Shown here: positions 1,881 through 6,969 of the stretch, piece by piece
How positions within the stretch are numbered: position 1 is the first letter of the stretch
How the letters are laid out: each line of letters opens with the position of its first letter
Sequence record: NC_048673.1
Length of the DNA stretch: 64,000 bases
Reading direction: 5' to 3' (one strand)
Position numbers and translations under genes: made by a program
The notes under the pieces: model-generated
The model's input: only the letters and a program-made list of their open reading frames with translations
Told to the model about the DNA's origin: nothing
Database searches by the model: none

Positions 1881-2132
1881 TTAACTATATTGATAACCGG
1901 CGTTAGCCTTTTTCATTTCGTAATCATCATCAACAAAAACATCGTGATTACCGTGCATGATATCATGTTTCAATTTACGATCTCGCTGACGACTCAATGT
2001 ATTATAACGATCTTTGACACCCGATTCTGGATAACTAGGATATTTATCTCCCAGATCCCGATTCACTTTAAGTTCATCACCATACCAACTGTCCAGATGT
2101 TTTTCATTTTTACGACGAAATGTCTTACCCAT
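1881..2132 (-). CDS. hypothetical protein
   Basis: 83-aa ORF (MGKTFRRKNEK...) with AAGGA SD. Confidence 0.65.
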   Translation of the reverse strand: MGKTFRRKNEKHLDSWYGDELKVNRDLGDKYPSYPESGVKDRYNTLSRQRDRKLKHDIMHGNHDVFVDDDYEMKKANAGYQYS

Positions 2133-2142
2133 ATATCATTCC

Positions 2143-2337
2143 TTACAGGCTTTCTATGTATTTAATCACTCGGTTTAGTATTTCATCTGAATCATTTATC
2201 TCAATATCATCAAATGCATACTTTATCTTTTTTATTACAGTTTCTTTCTTCCATCCGATCTCGAAAGCATCATTAACGAAAGAAACCCAATCAATAATAT
2301 AACCGGAATTATAAAATTTCTCTATCAGAATATCCAA
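2143..2337 (-). CDS. hypothetical protein; the in-frame upstream extension carries an AlaRS-like motif
   Basis: Frame is open upstream to a TAG at 2392-2394 and reads FYQFETNGIPLDILIEKF; true start unclear. Confidence 0.45.
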   Translation of the reverse strand: MDILIEKFYNSGYIIDWVSFVNDAFEIGWKKETVIKKIKYAFDDIEINDSDEILNRVIKYIESL

Positions 2338-2487
2338 CGGAATACCATTTGTTTCAAACTGATAAAATATATTACATAAAACCGGAATACCACTATTGGT
2401 ATAACCATTTACAAAAACACTATTTTTACCTTTACGTCCTAACGGCTTGCGTTTAGCGGTGACATATACAACCTCTCTTTTTAAGTT

Positions 2488-2960
2488 TTAGCTTCATGTG
2501 CGGCTGCAAAGCAGGTCGAACCACCAAGGCACATACTTGTTGATGTGGTTCCGTAAATCGATCCGGTCGCACCATCACCGGACTTAATAGCATTGGCTAT
2601 CCGAGCCCAACATACAAACATCATCACCCCAATGGACTACGCCTGCAAAACGGTCTTGCTCGTTACTTTTACGCTTAGGCCCTTATGGGAATCTAAGCCT
2701 TATATTTAACGTCATAACGGACGAGCTTATGTGATGGCTTGAATCAGTGGTCATTCACAAGCAATACTCCCTATGTAACCTTTTACCCGTCACGGACTAG
2801 AACCTTATTACAGGGAAGGAACCTACATCACCATTTGAGTAATGGGAGAGGTCGGGGTTCGGTTTTTATTTTCTAGCTTTCACTAGATTTTTTACAAATA
2901 CCGGTGGGCTACTTAAAGCGTCGATTCTCATAGACCGGACTATTGACGAGAATCCAAAAT
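2488..2960 (-). ncRNA. candidate large structured ncRNA, 3' part
   Basis: About 470 nt with no credible ORF, higher GC, at least 9 hairpins and a possible pseudoknot (loop 2934-2939 with 2900-2905). Confidence 0.5.
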
Positions 2961-2961
2961 T

Positions 2962-3037
2962 TGGTGCCGAATGTCCGACTCGAACGGACCACCCCAGCGT
3001 TACAAAGGCTGTGCTCTACCAGATGAGCTAATTCGGC
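2962..3037 (-). tRNA. tRNA-Thr(UGU)
   Basis: 76-nt cloverleaf; GCCGAAT/ATTCGGC acceptor stem, TTCGAGT T-loop, encoded CCA. Confidence 0.95.
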
Positions 3038-3038
3038 A

Positions 3039-3315
3039 GCGGATTATAATCAGGATCGTTAGACTGTGATTATATCCTAATGTAGTTGACATGCTATCAC
3101 AAGGAGGAAGGACGTTCAACTGATTTTGTCCATCTGTTCGTTGTTTGGTAAAGGACAGTTACCTCAAGTTCAACCCTGCTTGTCAAGGAGTAGTTACCAT
3201 ATCGTCTTTATACTACCAATCCCGCCTGAAACCTAAAGGCACGTTTCAGGATATCCAGATTCTCTATGGCTGGCTTATTCCGGGGCATACGTCGTTACCC
3301 GTTCTTTGTGCTAAG
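3039..3315 (-). ncRNA. candidate large structured ncRNA, 5' part
   Basis: Non-coding; hairpins at 3225-3250 (8 bp) and 3041-3077 (11 bp) plus others. Confidence 0.45.
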
Positions 3316-3391
3316 TGGTCGGTGATACAGGACTCGAACCTGTGACCCTCTGGTCCCAAACCAGACGCGCTACCAACTGCGCTAATCACCG
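3316..3391 (-). tRNA. tRNA-Pro(UGG)
   Basis: 76-nt cloverleaf; TCTGG-TT TGG GA-CCAGA anticodon arm; CCA. Confidence 0.96.
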
Positions 3392-3545
3392 AAAAGTTCC
3401 AAACCAACTGTATTTTACATACCAGATGACCACATCCCTATAATGGTTGATTTGGATTACCCCGTGCTTATCCGTAACGGTTTAAAACCGCAAGGGGGCA
3501 TCGTCTCCGAGGATTTTATCAGAACGTCTTCTAACTTCTTCTATT

Positions 3546-3636
3546 TGGTGGATGCTGTTGGATTCGAACCAACTTGTTTACCCAGAGGGAACGGATTTAC
3601 AGTCCGCCGCTACACCGCCATCGTAGCCGAACATCC
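3546..3636 (-). tRNA. tRNA-Tyr(GUA)
   Basis: 91 nt with long variable arm; anticodon GTA; CCA. Confidence 0.95.
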
Positions 3637-3642
3637 AGAATT

Positions 3643-3718
3643 TGGCTGGCGAGGTGGGATTCGAACCCACGACATACGGATTAACAGTCCGCTGTTCTAC
3701 CTACTGAACTACACGCCA
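3643..3718 (-). tRNA. tRNA-Asn(GUU)
   Basis: 76-nt cloverleaf; anticodon GTT; CCA. Confidence 0.95.
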
Positions 3719-3719
3719 T

Positions 3720-3797
3720 TGGAAGCGGGAGGTGGATTTGAACCACCGATTTCCAGATAATGAGTCTGGCGAGAACTCCTGACTTCTCCACCCCGCT
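3720..3797 (-). tRNA. tRNA-Met(CAU), initiator-like scaffold with atypical features
   Basis: AGCGGGGTGGAG... 5' end resembles fMet tRNA; anticodon loop CT CAT TA; CCA. Confidence 0.88.
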
Positions 3798-3961
3798 ATG
3801 ATATTTAGGGTGGTCTTTCACCCTTCATGAATCTTGGTCATTATAACCCGGCTACATACGCGCATCAACATCCCTTTTGATATTTTTAGAAGCGATGGGA
3901 CTCTGTATCGCTTCATTATTATCGTAAGGTCAACGACCATTAAATTCGTGAGAGCTTACAA

Positions 3962-4156
3962 CTATAGAATATATGCATTAACTATGGATTTTTCGATCTG
4001 TCTTACTGATGTAAGTTTACTCTTACCTTTAAACTTAAAGGCAGGTTCTCCATTTGGAGCAAACCCAAAGACTACTAAACTATGGCGTCCATTCTTCCAA
4101 TGGATTATACCATCACCAACTGACCAATTTTCAATTATGGATTTTATACCAGACAT
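3962..4156 (-). CDS. hypothetical protein inside the tRNA cluster
   Basis: 64-aa ORF with GAGAG SD. Confidence 0.55.
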   Translation of the reverse strand: MSGIKSIIENWSVGDGIIHWKNGRHSLVVFGFAPNGEPAFKFKGKSKLTSVRQIEKSIVNAYIL

Positions 4157-4178
4157 AATATAGCTCTCATCAAAAATT

Positions 4179-4255
4179 TGGTGGCCCCTACTGGACTCGA
4201 ACCAGTGACCAACCGATTATGAGTCGGTTGCTCTAACCAACTGAGCTAAGGGGCC
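4179..4255 (-). tRNA. tRNA-Ile2(CAU, lysidine type)
   Basis: GGCCCCT/AGGGGCC acceptor stem and body closely resemble enterobacterial ileX; anticodon CAT. Confidence 0.88.
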
Positions 4256-4339
4256 AAATGATATGTTCTTTAGTCGAGCCGACTTATCCGTATTCTTTCA
4301 ACGGTGAGCTGATAGCTGTAACACATCAATTTTAAATCT

Positions 4340-4415
4340 TGGAGCGGGTAGCCGGTAACGATCCGGTCTACTCAAACTTGGAAGGCTTGCATGTATCCAT
4401 AAACACCTTACCCGC
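4340..4415 (-). tRNA. tRNA-Gly(UCC)
   Basis: GCGGGTA/TACCCGC acceptor stem, U73, anticodon TCC; non-canonical T-loop ATCGTTA. Confidence 0.88.
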
Positions 4416-4416
4416 T

Positions 4417-4500
4417 TGGTCGGGATGGACGGACTCGAACCGTCACGCCTATGGCGCTAGAACCTAAATCTAGTGTGTCTGCCAATTTCACCACATCCCG
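4417..4500 (-). tRNA. tRNA-Leu(UAG)
   Basis: 84 nt with variable arm; anticodon TAG; CCA. Confidence 0.95.
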
Positions 4501-4577
4501 TGGTGCGCCGTACTGGATTCGAACCAGTGACCCACGCTTTAGAAGAACGTTGCTCTATCCAACTGAGCTAACAGCGC
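4501..4577 (-). tRNA. tRNA-Arg(UCU)
   Basis: 77-nt cloverleaf; anticodon TCT; CCA. Confidence 0.95.
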
Positions 4578-4579
4578 AA

Positions 4580-4624
4580 TTTATATAAACATCATATCAT
4601 AGTTAGAAAGGATGTTTAACTTTT
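4580..4624 (-). promoter_or_regulatory. sigma70-type promoter driving the tRNA array (copy 1 of a 45-bp repeat)
   Basis: Minus strand TTAAAC-17 nt-TATGAT with extended TG; near-identical to 5694-5738. Confidence 0.7.
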
Positions 4625-5006
4625 ATTTGAAGTATTTTTCGAAGTAAGCGACTGGATGTCTGGCTTCTTCATCATACTCGTATTTAGGGGTGTCAGAAAA
4701 CAATACCCTATAAGCAGTTTTCATCCCCGAACCATATGGTATCTCAATTTCATCGTTAAAGTCAAATGCTATATAACCTTTTTTACGGAGAGACCGACAA
4801 CTAACACTCAACCAAGGTCCACAACAGGATCTAAGTCTACCAATTGCATAGATATCCTTACCATCATTGTTAATATAGCAATAAATTTTGTCTACATCAA
4901 CACCATGGATATTTTTCCATTCTTCGCTGGTTTGTTTGAAGACCAAACTTGATTGAATCTCAGTAAGATCTTTCATGCTAAACCACCATATATTTCCACA
5001 TCCCAA
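4623..5006 (-). CDS. hypothetical protein
   Basis: 127-aa ORF; true start probably at an internal Met. Confidence 0.6.
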   Translation of the reverse strand: MGCGNIWWFSMKDLTEIQSSLVFKQTSEEWKNIHGVDVDKIYCYINNDGKDIYAIGRLRSCCGPWLSVSCRSLRKKGYIAFDFNDEIEIPYGSGMKTAYRVLFSDTPKYEYDEEARHPVAYFEKYFK

Positions 5007-5362
5007 GAAATGATTTCTGTAACTTTGTAATTAGCACAGTCACCATTAGCCAAACCACGGATACAGAAAGAAGGAAGACACCCATGAACATCATACACTT
5101 TGTCATTGGTTATTTCTACGTCACCCGTAACAATAATGATATTACCTTTCTTGTAAGTTTCTACGGAATTCAGAATACCAACCGGATCGGGGGTATCTTT
5201 AGCATTATCGACGTTAAAACATTTTTGACCAAAATTGATTAGAACTGGTAGCTTTTCAGAGAATTCATCTACAACTTGTTCACTCAAAATGAATTTTTGA
5301 CCATTAGTATTGACCAATAAACCTTTTTCATTAAGGTTATAGGCACCAAGCTTCACTTTCAT
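4973..5362 (-). CDS. hypothetical protein, possible degenerate prohead-protease-fold paralog
   Basis: 129 aa; SFCIRGLA...ISWDV resembles gp21 GVSSRGLG...VGVDV. Confidence 0.55.
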   Translation of the reverse strand: MKVKLGAYNLNEKGLLVNTNGQKFILSEQVVDEFSEKLPVLINFGQKCFNVDNAKDTPDPVGILNSVETYKKGNIIIVTGDVEITNDKVYDVHGCLPSFCIRGLANGDCANYKVTEIISWDVEIYGGLA

Positions 5363-5597
5363 TTTAATATCTCGATTTTTGATAGAAAGGCTTCAAATGT
5401 TTACCACGCATAATCTTAACGCATTTACCTTTACAGTGATCTTCATTGAAGATACTACTCCAAAGGACATCGCGCATGTAATTTCTGATGTATACGTTCA
5501 TATTAAGCATCTCATATTGAATTTTGGAGATGATAAACTCATTTTACGTTCAAAAGCTCATTCAACAAAAAGGAATTTGGGTTTATCATCTCGTATT

Positions 5598-5690
5598 TGG
5601 TGCGTGAGGTGGGAATCGAACCCACGATGTGCCATTATGCAGTATCGGATTTTAAGTCCGATGCGTTTCAACCAACTTCGCCACTCACGC
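5598..5690 (-). tRNA. tRNA-Leu(UAA)
   Basis: 93 nt with long variable arm; anticodon TAA; CCA. Confidence 0.94.
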
Positions 5691-5693
5691 TCA

Positions 5694-5738
5694 TTTATAT
5701 AAACATCATATCACAGTTAGAAAGGATGTTTAACTTTT
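5694..5738 (-). promoter_or_regulatory. sigma70-type promoter upstream of tRNA-Leu(UAA) (copy 2)
   Basis: Differs from 4580-4624 by 1 nt. Confidence 0.7.
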
Positions 5739-5990
5739 ATTTTTACTTTCTTTTATACCAAGTCGATACGCTTCCACACAGTATGCATCTATCCTCGATA
5801 CAGGGACCATAAAAGCTTTAGAAAGCCGAATCTTAATACGTTCGTTCTCTTTAGCCCGCTCATATAGTTTTCGAAATGGCTCAGGGTCTATAGGCTGAAC
5901 AGAACATATTTGGTTTGCTATATCTAGCGGGTGTATTCTTCCCACCAAATTTACTTTTTCTGTTTCTAAAAACATCATATCATTTCTCAC
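5730..5990 (-). CDS. hypothetical protein
   Basis: 86-aa ORF overlapping the end of the upstream gene. Confidence 0.6.
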   Translation of the reverse strand: MRNDMMFLETEKVNLVGRIHPLDIANQICSVQPIDPEPFRKLYERAKENERIKIRLSKAFMVPVSRIDAYCVEAYRLGIKESKNKS

Positions 5991-6969
5991 TCAGATAAAC
6001 ATCATCATGCTTATACTCTTTGAACTCATTGTATTTAGAGTCCGTAATTTCAAGACAGTCGCCAACTCGAATCAAATCAACTTCATTTGACCAATTTGGT
6101 TTAGTTGATTCCACAACCATAGAGTAAGGAATCTTAACATCCCATTCAACCGGAGTCAACTGAATTTTTTCTGTTTGGTTAAACCCAGCAATCTGGATTT
6201 TTGTCATCATACGAACCTTTTCAAACTGCTTGCATGTCTGACGACCATATTCCTGTGATGTTAGCACAATATCCAAGTTATTACAACCAGCATAAAAATT
6301 TTCTAATTTTGCAAATTCTTCAATATTTTTGAAGATTGCATAAGTTGTATCGTCGTGATGAGCATAATCATTAATCTGATCTTGAGTTTTAATCAATCTG
6401 CTAAGTTCATAATGTTTTGCATTACCAATATGAACATTATCAATCATGATCTTAACATGATTCACAAGGATATCATCTTCTGGGTCTTCACTATCTTCGA
6501 TCAACTCTTTCAGTCTTTCTTGGAGAGTTTTAAGATGTCTAGCGACTCGTTCCGGTGTTACCGGTAGCCAGTCATCTGCATCAGAAACGTCGTATACAGG
6601 TTTCTCCCACCAACAAGTAATACCAAACTCCGAAACGAGATCGTATACATCAGACTTTACTACAATAAAAGAAGTCTCGTATTTTGTTTTGCTCCATAGG
6701 TCTGGGATTGTCCAACGATTTTCATCGTATGGATAAAATCCATGGGCTAAGTTCTCTTTAGAGACACCATCGTTAAACATGGATACGTTTTTCATTAAGC
6801 ATTCTAACGCAAGATTATCATCAATGTCAAACTCACCATAATCGTCATACACCGCAGTAAGTGGGAAAGCACTAATACAGTGTTTACCAGCAACTGGGAT
6901 CAAGCGAACTTTATCACCACCTTGAACGATTTGACGACTAACAGAACAAACAGTATTAAAACTACCCAT
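5980..6969 (-). CDS. conserved phage hypothetical protein
   Basis: Probable start MGSFNTVCSVSRQ at 6969 (the ORF track starts at an upstream TTG); YDDYG motif. Confidence 0.7.
   Translation of the reverse strand: MGSFNTVCSVSRQIVQGGDKVRLIPVAGKHCISAFPLTAVYDDYGEFDIDDNLALECLMKNVSMFNDGVSKENLAHGFYPYDENRWTIPDLWSKTKYETSFIVVKSDVYDLVSEFGITCWWEKPVYDVSDADDWLPVTPERVARHLKTLQERLKELIEDSEDPEDDILVNHVKIMIDNVHIGNAKHYELSRLIKTQDQINDYAHHDDTTYAIFKNIEEFAKLENFYAGCNNLDIVLTSQEYGRQTCKQFEKVRMMTKIQIAGFNQTEKIQLTPVEWDVKIPYSMVVESTKPNWSNEVDLIRVGDCLEITDSKYNEFKEYKHDDVYLSEK

Follow-up and report, generated by a model that had tools for sequence, protein, structure and literature searches.

Small structured RNAs probably occupy the spacers of a bacteriophage tRNA array

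Positions 2488-3315 of sequence record NC_048673.1 were studied within a window of 64,000 nt, by which we mean the whole stretch of DNA analysed and to which all positions refer. We consider it probable (about 0.72) that this segment is part of a phage tRNA array in which the spacers are held by independent small structured RNAs, namely an RNA designated RNA-B, two hairpins, module IIa, element A, and modules IIc and IId. A first-pass annotation made from the same letters had described a single ornate non-coding RNA of about 820 nt with tRNA-Thr embedded in it. Conserved, structured non-coding flanks outside the Rfam families were indeed found, but a single RNA was not, since the parts occur separately.

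Positions 2400-3400 match Aeromonas phage AS-zj (MF448340; Ceceduovirus, Straboviridae) at 100% identity. Ten tRNA genes are located on the minus strand at 2962-5690 (ARAGORN, Rfam); all the features lie on this strand, which corrects the first-pass annotation, and all modules are described as read along it. The two non-coding, GC-richer blocks of about 275 and 470 nt that had been noticed around tRNA-Thr are real. The spacer that separates tRNA-Pro from tRNA-Thr is block I (3315-3038, 278 nt), and block II (2961-2488, 474 nt) lies downstream of tRNA-Thr. Their GC content is 44-46%, compared with 29-40% in the adjoining open reading frames (ORFs), and the blocks contain only short ORFs, one of which (2453-2593) is interrupted by tRNA-Trp in relatives. 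Ten related Aeromonas phages were compared by tRNA maps, blastn, and alignment. Covariation was judged against controls in which the partner strands were slid, and against shuffles. Covariance models were made for RNA-B (R1), element A (R2), and module IIa (R3).

RNA-B gave the strongest comparative evidence. Its position and proposed fold, with the two tRNA genes that enclose block I, are as follows.

3316..3391, minus strand: tRNA-Pro(UGG), upstream neighbour of RNA-B (ARAGORN; Rfam tRNA, 70.1 bits)
3124..3310, minus strand: RNA-B, 187 nt, starting 5 nt past the CCA end of tRNA-Pro (covariation, 9 and 12 sequences)
3301-3298/3284-3281, minus strand: RNA-B H0, proposed helix
3273-3270/3258-3255, minus strand: RNA-B H1, proposed helix
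3250-3243/3232-3225, minus strand: RNA-B H2, proposed helix
3217-3212/3194-3189, minus strand: RNA-B H3, its loop containing the conserved GACGAUA
3188-3184/3178-3174 (S1) and 3182-3179/3168-3165 (S2), minus strand: RNA-B pseudoknot 1, proposed helices
3163-3159/3151-3147, minus strand: RNA-B H5, proposed helix
3156-3153/3131-3128, minus strand: RNA-B pseudoknot 2, H5 loop to 3' tail, proposed helix
2962..3037, minus strand: tRNA-Thr(UGU), an ordinary tRNA gene (ARAGORN, Rfam)

We propose that RNA-B folds into eight helices, with two pseudoknots among them. In nine sequences, 98.9% of the cells pair (27-48% in the slid controls), and 12 pairs are doubly changed (1-2 in the controls). The 3' domain, for which 12 sequences from five lineages were available, is 97.4% paired against at most 44% in the slid controls, with 13 pairs and 57 cells doubly changed. 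None of 500 shuffles reached as much; because the alignments are small and the sequences related, such counts are not probabilities. Both pseudoknot helices are 100% paired, the second occurring as GUCC:GGAC, ACCC:GGGU, and GCCC:GGGC. The 5' domain has two hairpins at the same places in 12 of 12 sequences, though the sequences differ. The loops GACGAUA, CGGGAUUG, and ACCAAAC are invariant and look like binding surfaces, and no reading frame is open across all 12 members. The copy in the window shows the traits of the family: a length of about 185 nt, a 5' CACAA, two 5' hairpins, H2, H3 with its GACGAUA loop, an H-type pseudoknot of the form CUUGAC-AG-CAGG...CU-G, and an H5 loop that pairs with the 3' GG-C tail. 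The R1 score of 148.6 bits for 3124-3250 is high by construction, as the window sequence is in the seed; independent support for the family comes from the covariation in 12 sequences of five lineages.

The RNA-B core was first linked to E. coli jumbo phages by a distant blastn match, and a search back with that copy gave 70 phage records. The carriers include Asteriusvirus and Alcyoneusvirus jumbo phages (E. coli, Salmonella, Klebsiella), Bragavirus T4-like phages (Proteus, Morganella, Shigella), and T5-like Proteus phages. In the case of PM2 and SdyM_006, an RNA-B of about 185 nt exactly spans the gap between tRNA-Gly and tRNA-Asp, and in Proteus phage 1, RNA-B spans the gap between tRNA-Leu and tRNA-Ser. 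In the jumbo phages vB_Ec-M-J and RaK2, RNA-B stands alone behind a sigma70-type promoter (11/12), TTGACT-17-TATAAT at 7 nt from the shared 5' CACAA in vB_Ec-M-J and TTGACA-17-TATTAT at 13 nt in RaK2. With R1, the window contained one copy, and no copy was found in the T4 tRNA region, in other T-even loci, or in the Aswh_1 locus. RNA-B was not found in any of 5,426 E. coli genomes, and it matched no Rfam family.

Module IIa is the first unit of block II.

2891..2958, minus strand: module IIa, a hairpin-type pseudoknot (covariation, six sequences)
2954-2948/2929-2923, minus strand: IIa outer stem (covariation)
2943-2940/2933-2930, minus strand: IIa inner stem
2938-2934/2905-2901, minus strand: IIa pseudoknot helix (covariation)

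The six sequences compared include ZPAH1, Aswh_1, and a T5-like contig (L044). The pseudoknot helix is fully paired (100%), with double changes in four of its five pairs, and occurs as CCGGU:ACCGG, CGCCU:AGGCG, and CGCAC:GUGCG; between the hairpin and the tail runs an invariant linker, CGACGCUUUAAGUAGCC. In the T5-like contig, IIa is inserted within element A, and in phage 65, it directly follows tRNA-Asp. A weaker second copy is present in phage 65 and avDM6 (R3). The linker CUUUAAGU resembles the ToxI antitoxin repeat; this lead was dropped, as there was no Rfam ToxI match and no repeats, and tandem arrays like those of type III antitoxins were not found.

Element A follows IIa, with a hairpin in between.

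2873..2886, minus strand: hairpin UCUAG-UGAAAG-CUAGA before the element A lead-in (fold); replaced by other hairpins or domains in other phages
2767..2872, minus strand: element A (covariation, 12 and 17 sequences)
within 2872-2767, minus strand: A-rich lead-in of element A, AAUAAAAACC
2850-2846/2771-2767, minus strand: element A P1
2845-2831, minus strand: element A P2 hairpin, which varies among phages
2819-2815/2783-2779, minus strand: element A helix Pa (covariation)
2814-2801, minus strand: invariant core of element A, CCUGUAAUAAGGUU
2797-2795/2791-2789, minus strand: element A P3, a hairpin of 3 bp (covariation)
2702..2766, minus strand: stretch 3' of element A (minimum free energy (MFE) z -1.54), conserved with ZPAH1 and Aswh_1 only and absent from phage 65 and avDM6

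The traits of the family, an invariant CCUGUAAYAAGGU core enclosed by the covarying Pa and preceded by a variable P2, are all present in the window. In 12 sequences, Pa and P3 have 90.6% of their cells paired, compared with 41-60% in the slid controls, and in 17 sequences including T4, the outer Pa is 94% paired. At least six complementary versions of Pa occur (CCUU:AAGG, CUUUU:AAAAG, CUCUU:AAGAG, CUGG:CCAG, CCC:GGG, and CGCG:CGCG). P2 differs in sequence and length among phages, often with a GNRA loop. The R2 score for 2767-2834, a seed member, is 87.3 bits. Two other readings of the element were rejected: a helix UGUAA:UUACA, which would cross Pa with a zero-length linker and whose pairing is broken by two of three variants, and a T-loop reading of GGUUCUAGUCC, which conflicts with the covarying P3.

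Element A was also found between tRNA-Glu and tRNA-Ile in T5-like Aeromonas phages, and in Ahp1, Citrobacter phage Ci1, Shewanella phage KASIA, and IMG/VR contigs. No tRNA is nearby in ESCO10, T4, or KASIA. In E. coli phage ESCO10, the element lies between ADP-ribosyltransferase genes and a vs.8 homologue, and the intergenic region that holds it has matches in 1044 phage records. In T4, the core was found at 64849-64917, between the denV stop and vs.8 (R2, 30.4 bits). Scans for a 26-nt pattern of element A gave 25 hits in IMG/VR, of which five were real, and none in JGI metagenome contigs; a scan of genome contigs gave two real hits, both on mis-binned phage contigs. The annotated start of T4 vs.8 (64912) falls inside element A (NC_000866 64790-64940; compared locus L054, 7790-7940, minus strand), and the conserved vs.8 start (MRTFLTGPYLSLMN; MRTFLTG...) lies downstream of the element when ESCO10 and ECML-134 are compared. 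ECML-134 has a stop codon within the T4-type N-terminal extension of vs.8. The start of vs.8 is thus probably mis-annotated in T4, judging from these sequences.

The way in which the modules are inherited separates them from one another. Jumbo, Proteus, Shigella, and T5-like phages have RNA-B without any module of block II, and T-even, T5-like, and other phages have element A without RNA-B. Aswh_1 has the block II modules and lacks RNA-B (4.3 kb compared). Phage 65 and avDM6 lack 2870-2710 and keep both 2958-2891 and 2701-2559; phage 65, which also retains 2555-2487, is without element A, and the modules next to it are present. The tRNA genes come and go between the modules among relatives: in phage 65, tRNA-Ile, Ser, and Asp separate tRNA-Thr from the equivalent of 2958, and tRNA-Trp is likewise variable. 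P19, CC2, and Aszh-1 carry another tRNA-Thr allele with the same flanks, and in Aszh-1, 3315-3235 is replaced by a duplicate of 3085-2985. The comparison shows that gain, loss, and relocation affect every module independently from phage to phage, and that every well-sampled module keeps its helices through compensatory changes. In blastn comparisons with phage 65, the non-coding segments are about 88% identical and the next ORF about 80%; the blocks are better conserved than the adjoining ORF, a sign of constraint.

Several side observations concern this shuffling. The Aszh-1 record is marked UNVERIFIED_ORG; in it (L008, about 2355-2460), the 5' third of RNA-B is swapped for duplicated pre-tRNA-Thr sequence and a truncated tRNA-Thr copy. 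Homing-endonuclease genes (HNH, segD-like) occur within the tRNA arrays of relatives, at 3190-3693 in P19 (L006), 3257-3616 in ZPAH1 (L009), and 530-1135 in L052. They are comparable to segB in T4 and could plausibly drive the shuffling of the modules.

The remaining features are the two hairpins before tRNA-Thr and the downstream part of block II.

3084..3121, minus strand: hairpin AGUUGA/UCAACU with loop CCUUCCUCCUU (3111-3101); MFE z -2.66 for 3038-3123
3041..3077, minus strand: hairpin of an 11-bp imperfect palindrome directly 5' of tRNA-Thr (fold); conserved, with one-sided changes only
2559..2701, minus strand: module IIc, a multi-hairpin element of 143 nt (RNAalifold; MFE z -2.14), directly 5' of tRNA-Trp in relatives
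2698-2673, 2600-2587, and 2582-2562, minus strand: IIc hairpins
2556..2558, no strand assigned: insertion point of tRNA-Trp(CCA), a gene carried by AP1, P19, CC2, ZPAH1, and Aswh_1 and lacking in AS-zj
2487..2555, minus strand: module IId, with a stem 2551-2545/2524-2518 and a small hairpin (MFE z -0.34)

In the alignment of relatives, the hairpin at 3121-3084 shows a compensatory change from A-U to G-C in AP1, G2, and phage 65. Its loop CCUUCCUCCUU resembles the anti-Shine-Dalgarno end of 16S rRNA, and CCUUCCUC within the 3101-3111 loop is kept by all Aeromonas relatives. The hairpin at 3041-3077 overlaps a promoter-like ATCACA-16-TATAAT (10/12). For IIc, RNAalifold gave 43 pairs, four of them changed on both sides, with two alleles only; its identity to phage 65 is about 88%, against about 80% for the adjacent ORF. 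In IId, a crossing helix 2534-2529/2501-2496, the pairing that the first-pass annotation had seen as closing a multibranch, is possible, and the module, which is absent from avDM6, ZPAH1, and Aswh_1, may be the leader of the downstream ORF. Both IIc and IId are confined to this Aeromonas phage lineage.

At the tRNA-Trp site (compared loci L001, 1658-1732, and L005, about 1660-1730), Assk has a decayed copy that has lost 6 nt and is now missed by ARAGORN; from the sequences, the pattern looks like the loss of a tRNA gene caught in progress. The ORF that follows the blocks (phrog_22967, 2143-2487, minus strand) is open, with codon-level conservation to at least 2463, and lacks any ATG, GTG, or TTG before 2337. 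An AUG at 2465, preceded by a good Shine-Dalgarno sequence, is in another frame than this ORF and reaches a UAG stop after eight codons. In phage 65, with one extra A in an A-run, the AUG frame runs into the ORF save for an in-frame UAG. The arrangement could reflect slippage, frameshift, or read-through. Other non-coding spacers in the array (3392-3545, 3798-3961, and 4256-4339, minus strand) may hold more modules.

Folding energy and covariation gave different pictures. Measured against shuffles, the whole span had an MFE z of -1.89 (plus strand, -1.34), block I (3038-3315) one of -0.05, and block II (2488-2961) one of -1.76; the values of the modules ranged from +0.66 to -2.66. RNA-B has the best covariation and yet the worst value (+0.66); therefore, the energy test is uninformative here. 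The first-pass annotation had held that folding energies no better than those of shuffled controls would speak against it, and for most modules the energies are of that kind. Such a rule would reject the present finding, and the comparative data show that it is misleading here.

A number of points weigh against independent structured RNAs. The folding energy of most modules is no better than that of shuffles. The alignments are small (6-17 sequences) and consist of related sequences. IIc and IId are known only from close Aeromonas relatives, with little or no covariation, and the same holds for both hairpins before tRNA-Thr, which were not seen outside the Aeromonas lineage. Only part of the internal fold of element A is resolved, and its P3 is not kept in the enterobacterial members. 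We infer, moreover, the stable accumulation of these RNAs. Finally, some of the motifs may already be among the roughly 10,000 candidate structured RNAs of viruses in a published catalogue (PMC10690425).

Among the alternatives, the one that survives best, though it is rather improbable, is that the blocks are passive spacers of tRNA precursors and cassettes shuffled at the DNA level, whose hairpins punctuate processing or transcription (RNase sites, promoters, or cassettes like those called PeSL) and whose modules have no RNA function. PeSL cassettes, in the description attributed to Arbiol, Comeau and Krisch in 2010, reportedly consist of an early promoter and a simple stem-loop flanking small ORFs in T4-type phages. 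The likeness lies in short modular non-coding cassettes shuffled among T4-type genomes, and the 3041-3077 hairpin with its TATAAT resembles a promoter/stem-loop unit. The strongly modular and mobile behaviour described above, the promoter-like palindrome before tRNA-Thr, the constant position of IIc against tRNA-Trp in relatives, and the modules without covariation (IIc in part, and IId) all agree with passive spacers. However, RNA-B keeps eight helices, those of its two pseudoknots among them, and its invariant loops across phages of Aeromonas, Proteus, Shigella, E. coli, and Klebsiella, and in jumbo phages, where no tRNAs adjoin it, it has what appears to be a promoter of its own. In ESCO10, T4, and KASIA, element A has no tRNA in its vicinity, and the covariation of the IIa pseudoknot would not be needed for a DNA-level or simple cleavage signal. 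In contrast to PeSL, the folds of RNA-B, IIa, and element A are multi-helical or pseudoknotted and are kept by covariation, and these modules cross phage families.

The single large RNA of the first-pass annotation, GOLLD-like or of a new class, with two domains round the embedded tRNA-Thr that fold or assemble jointly, is very improbable, and the distribution of the modules largely refutes it. Many helices and pseudoknots are conserved, and no terminator separates the blocks, as such an RNA would have it. GOLLD and ROOL RNAs are likewise phage-encoded, often beside tRNA islands, pseudoknot-rich, and without known function. GOLLD is often longer than 800 nt, has a constant 3' region and a more variable 5' region, may have tRNAs in its linker, and assembles itself into a multimeric cage made of RNA alone. 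Proximity to a tRNA island, in some cases with a linker tRNA, is a feature that our segment shares and that is not specific to GOLLD. The units described here, however, are independent and of 70-190 nt, in contrast to one RNA of about 580 to 800 nt or more, and a universally co-inherited 3' domain is absent: instead of one contiguous RNA with an ever-present 3' region, the parts are separate in other phages and rearranged in close relatives. RNA-B is alone in five other lineages and element A is alone in T-even and T5-like phages, and modules are deleted, inserted, and permuted, with tRNA genes inserted in between. The models for GOLLD (RF01998, including its conserved 3' region), ROOL (RF03087), OLE (RF01071), and tmRNA (RF00023) gave no match, even at E<=10, and ARAGORN called no tmRNA. 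More generally, cmscan with Rfam 15 over the whole window at gathering thresholds and over 2300-4200 at E<=10 found only tRNAs and noise, as did Rfam scans of six homologous loci. The pairing of the two ends that had been proposed (3310-3314 with 2488-2492) is a helix of merely 5 bp without covariation, and both ends do not travel together in relatives. Even with the tRNA included, the MFE z of the whole span is only -1.89.

The individual structures drawn in the first-pass annotation fared better than its overall reading, save for the impression that hairpins are denser than expected by chance, which the folding energies against shuffles do not bear out. The search for homologs and covariation that it had suggested yielded relatives, with compensatory changes in the helices of RNA-B, IIa, and element A. 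The stem 3225-3250 is H2 of RNA-B, with five of eight pairs doubly changed; 2923-2954 is upheld by compensatory changes; 2562-2582 has one doubly changed pair. The suspected pseudoknot of the loop 2934-2939 with 2900-2905 exists as 2934-2938 with 2901-2905. The stems 2673-2698, 2587-2600, and 3041-3077 exist and are conserved; they show either no two-sided change or one-sided changes alone. Where a stem 2768-2816 had been drawn, the area proved to be the core of a conserved motif, but the supported helices, Pa and P3, do not exactly match the stem as drawn.

It is scarcely credible that the blocks are remnants of tRNA genes or small protein genes missed in annotation. In favour, tRNA genes are being lost in the array (Trp, absent here and decayed in Assk) and GeneMark placed the ORFs 65p134 and 65p135 in the longer Pro-Thr spacer of phage 65. 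Against it, the Rfam tRNA model recovered nothing further in 2300-4200 at E<=10, the RNA-B members share no open frame, the substitutions are compensatory pairs and not at third codon positions, and ORF 2453-2593 is split in relatives.

If the spacers hold independent structured RNAs, the tRNA array would be transcribed as a long precursor. No minus-strand terminator was found in 2000-6200, which, by analogy with T4 biology, makes co-transcription and release by tRNA-processing enzymes likely. The tRNA-processing machinery would release the pieces between the tRNAs, with RNase P acting at the tRNA 5' ends and endo- or exonucleases at the 3' ends, and the released pieces would be trimmed to their folded cores. 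The species 1 and 2 RNAs of T4 (rnaC and rnaD), which are released from tRNA precursor transcripts, would be the model for this process. As a free RNA, RNA-B would most likely work in trans: it would be trans-acting and partner-binding because it is expressed in two ways, from a tRNA slot or from its own promoter, and because its loops are invariant. Element A may act in cis in the vs.8 leader of T-even phages, or be another excised RNA here. Our best guess, and a tentative one, is that the modules have a protein partner, of host or phage origin, connected with translation, tRNA, or defence; neither vs.8 nor the ORF downstream of the blocks has a known function, so that no ligand or partner is suggested by them. 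It is possible, if rather doubtful, that RNA-B and perhaps IIa and element A represent new functional classes of phage RNA that use tRNA arrays as a platform for expression and processing. They would then work in trans, perhaps serving as decoys for, or inhibitors of, host defences that are directed at tRNAs or that sense RNA, or adopting folds like those of aptamers or ribozymes.

The closest analogues are RNA C and RNA D of T4, which are likewise small non-tRNA RNAs on the tRNA strand within a T4-type tRNA cluster; to our knowledge, they have been without an assigned function for 50 years. No homology to them was found: R1, R2, and R3 gave no hit in T4 69000-75000, and no common motifs were seen by eye. 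T4 rnaC has a tRNA-like T-arm (GGUUCGAAUCC, as read by eye), which RNA-B lacks. RNA-B is longer (187 nt, compared with 139 and 119 nt for the T4 RNAs), has two pseudoknots, and also occurs in T5-like and jumbo phages. The T4 RNAs have been detected as stable RNAs, and their function is still unknown (PMC9697503). YrlA RNAs (RF02553) are also structured non-tRNA RNAs beside tRNAs, in bacteria and phages, but RNA-B shows no tRNA-like domain; the sole YrlA hit in 2300-4200 is below the threshold (18.6 bits, with a gathering score of 69 bits) and overlaps ordinary tRNAs.

The T5-like phages showed other features of interest. Two of their contigs, L044 (JBOFFJ010000068.1) and L046, are binned in a Phocaeicola metagenome-assembled genome. 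L044 has 23 tRNA genes in 4.9 kb, one with the anticodon CUA, reported as 'Pyl' by ARAGORN and amber-suppressor-like. Weak Rfam YrlA hits (about 24 bits, E about 0.2) in T5-like Aeromonas tRNA arrays (L011, 439-499; L044, 1318-1378) may point to a further type of passenger that is not a tRNA. In the T5-like spacer RNA, the 5' domain (L044, 2881-2947) is again a hairpin, with a loop that pairs with CGCAACG further downstream; this domain stands alone in many Aeromonas phages (phiA047, PAc, 4L372D, TS9, and ST4) and is likewise modular.

Phage tRNA clusters are usually annotated as tRNAs and 'spacer'. Here, the spacers hold RNAs that are supported by covariation across phage families (Straboviridae, Demerecviridae, and the Asteriusvirus and Alcyoneusvirus jumbo phages). 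The modules are annotated in none of the GenBank records examined and are in none of the Rfam 15 families, and a literature search found no paper describing these motifs. Folding energy against shuffled sequences alone would have dismissed the best-supported of them. If our reading is true, T4 itself would have in element A a conserved RNA element that has gone unrecognised, in the leader between denV and vs.8. A second and a third family of tRNA-array passengers, one fitting a tRNA slot exactly and the other present in T4 and hundreds of genetically tractable coliphages, would give comparative leverage on the question of T4 RNA C and RNA D.

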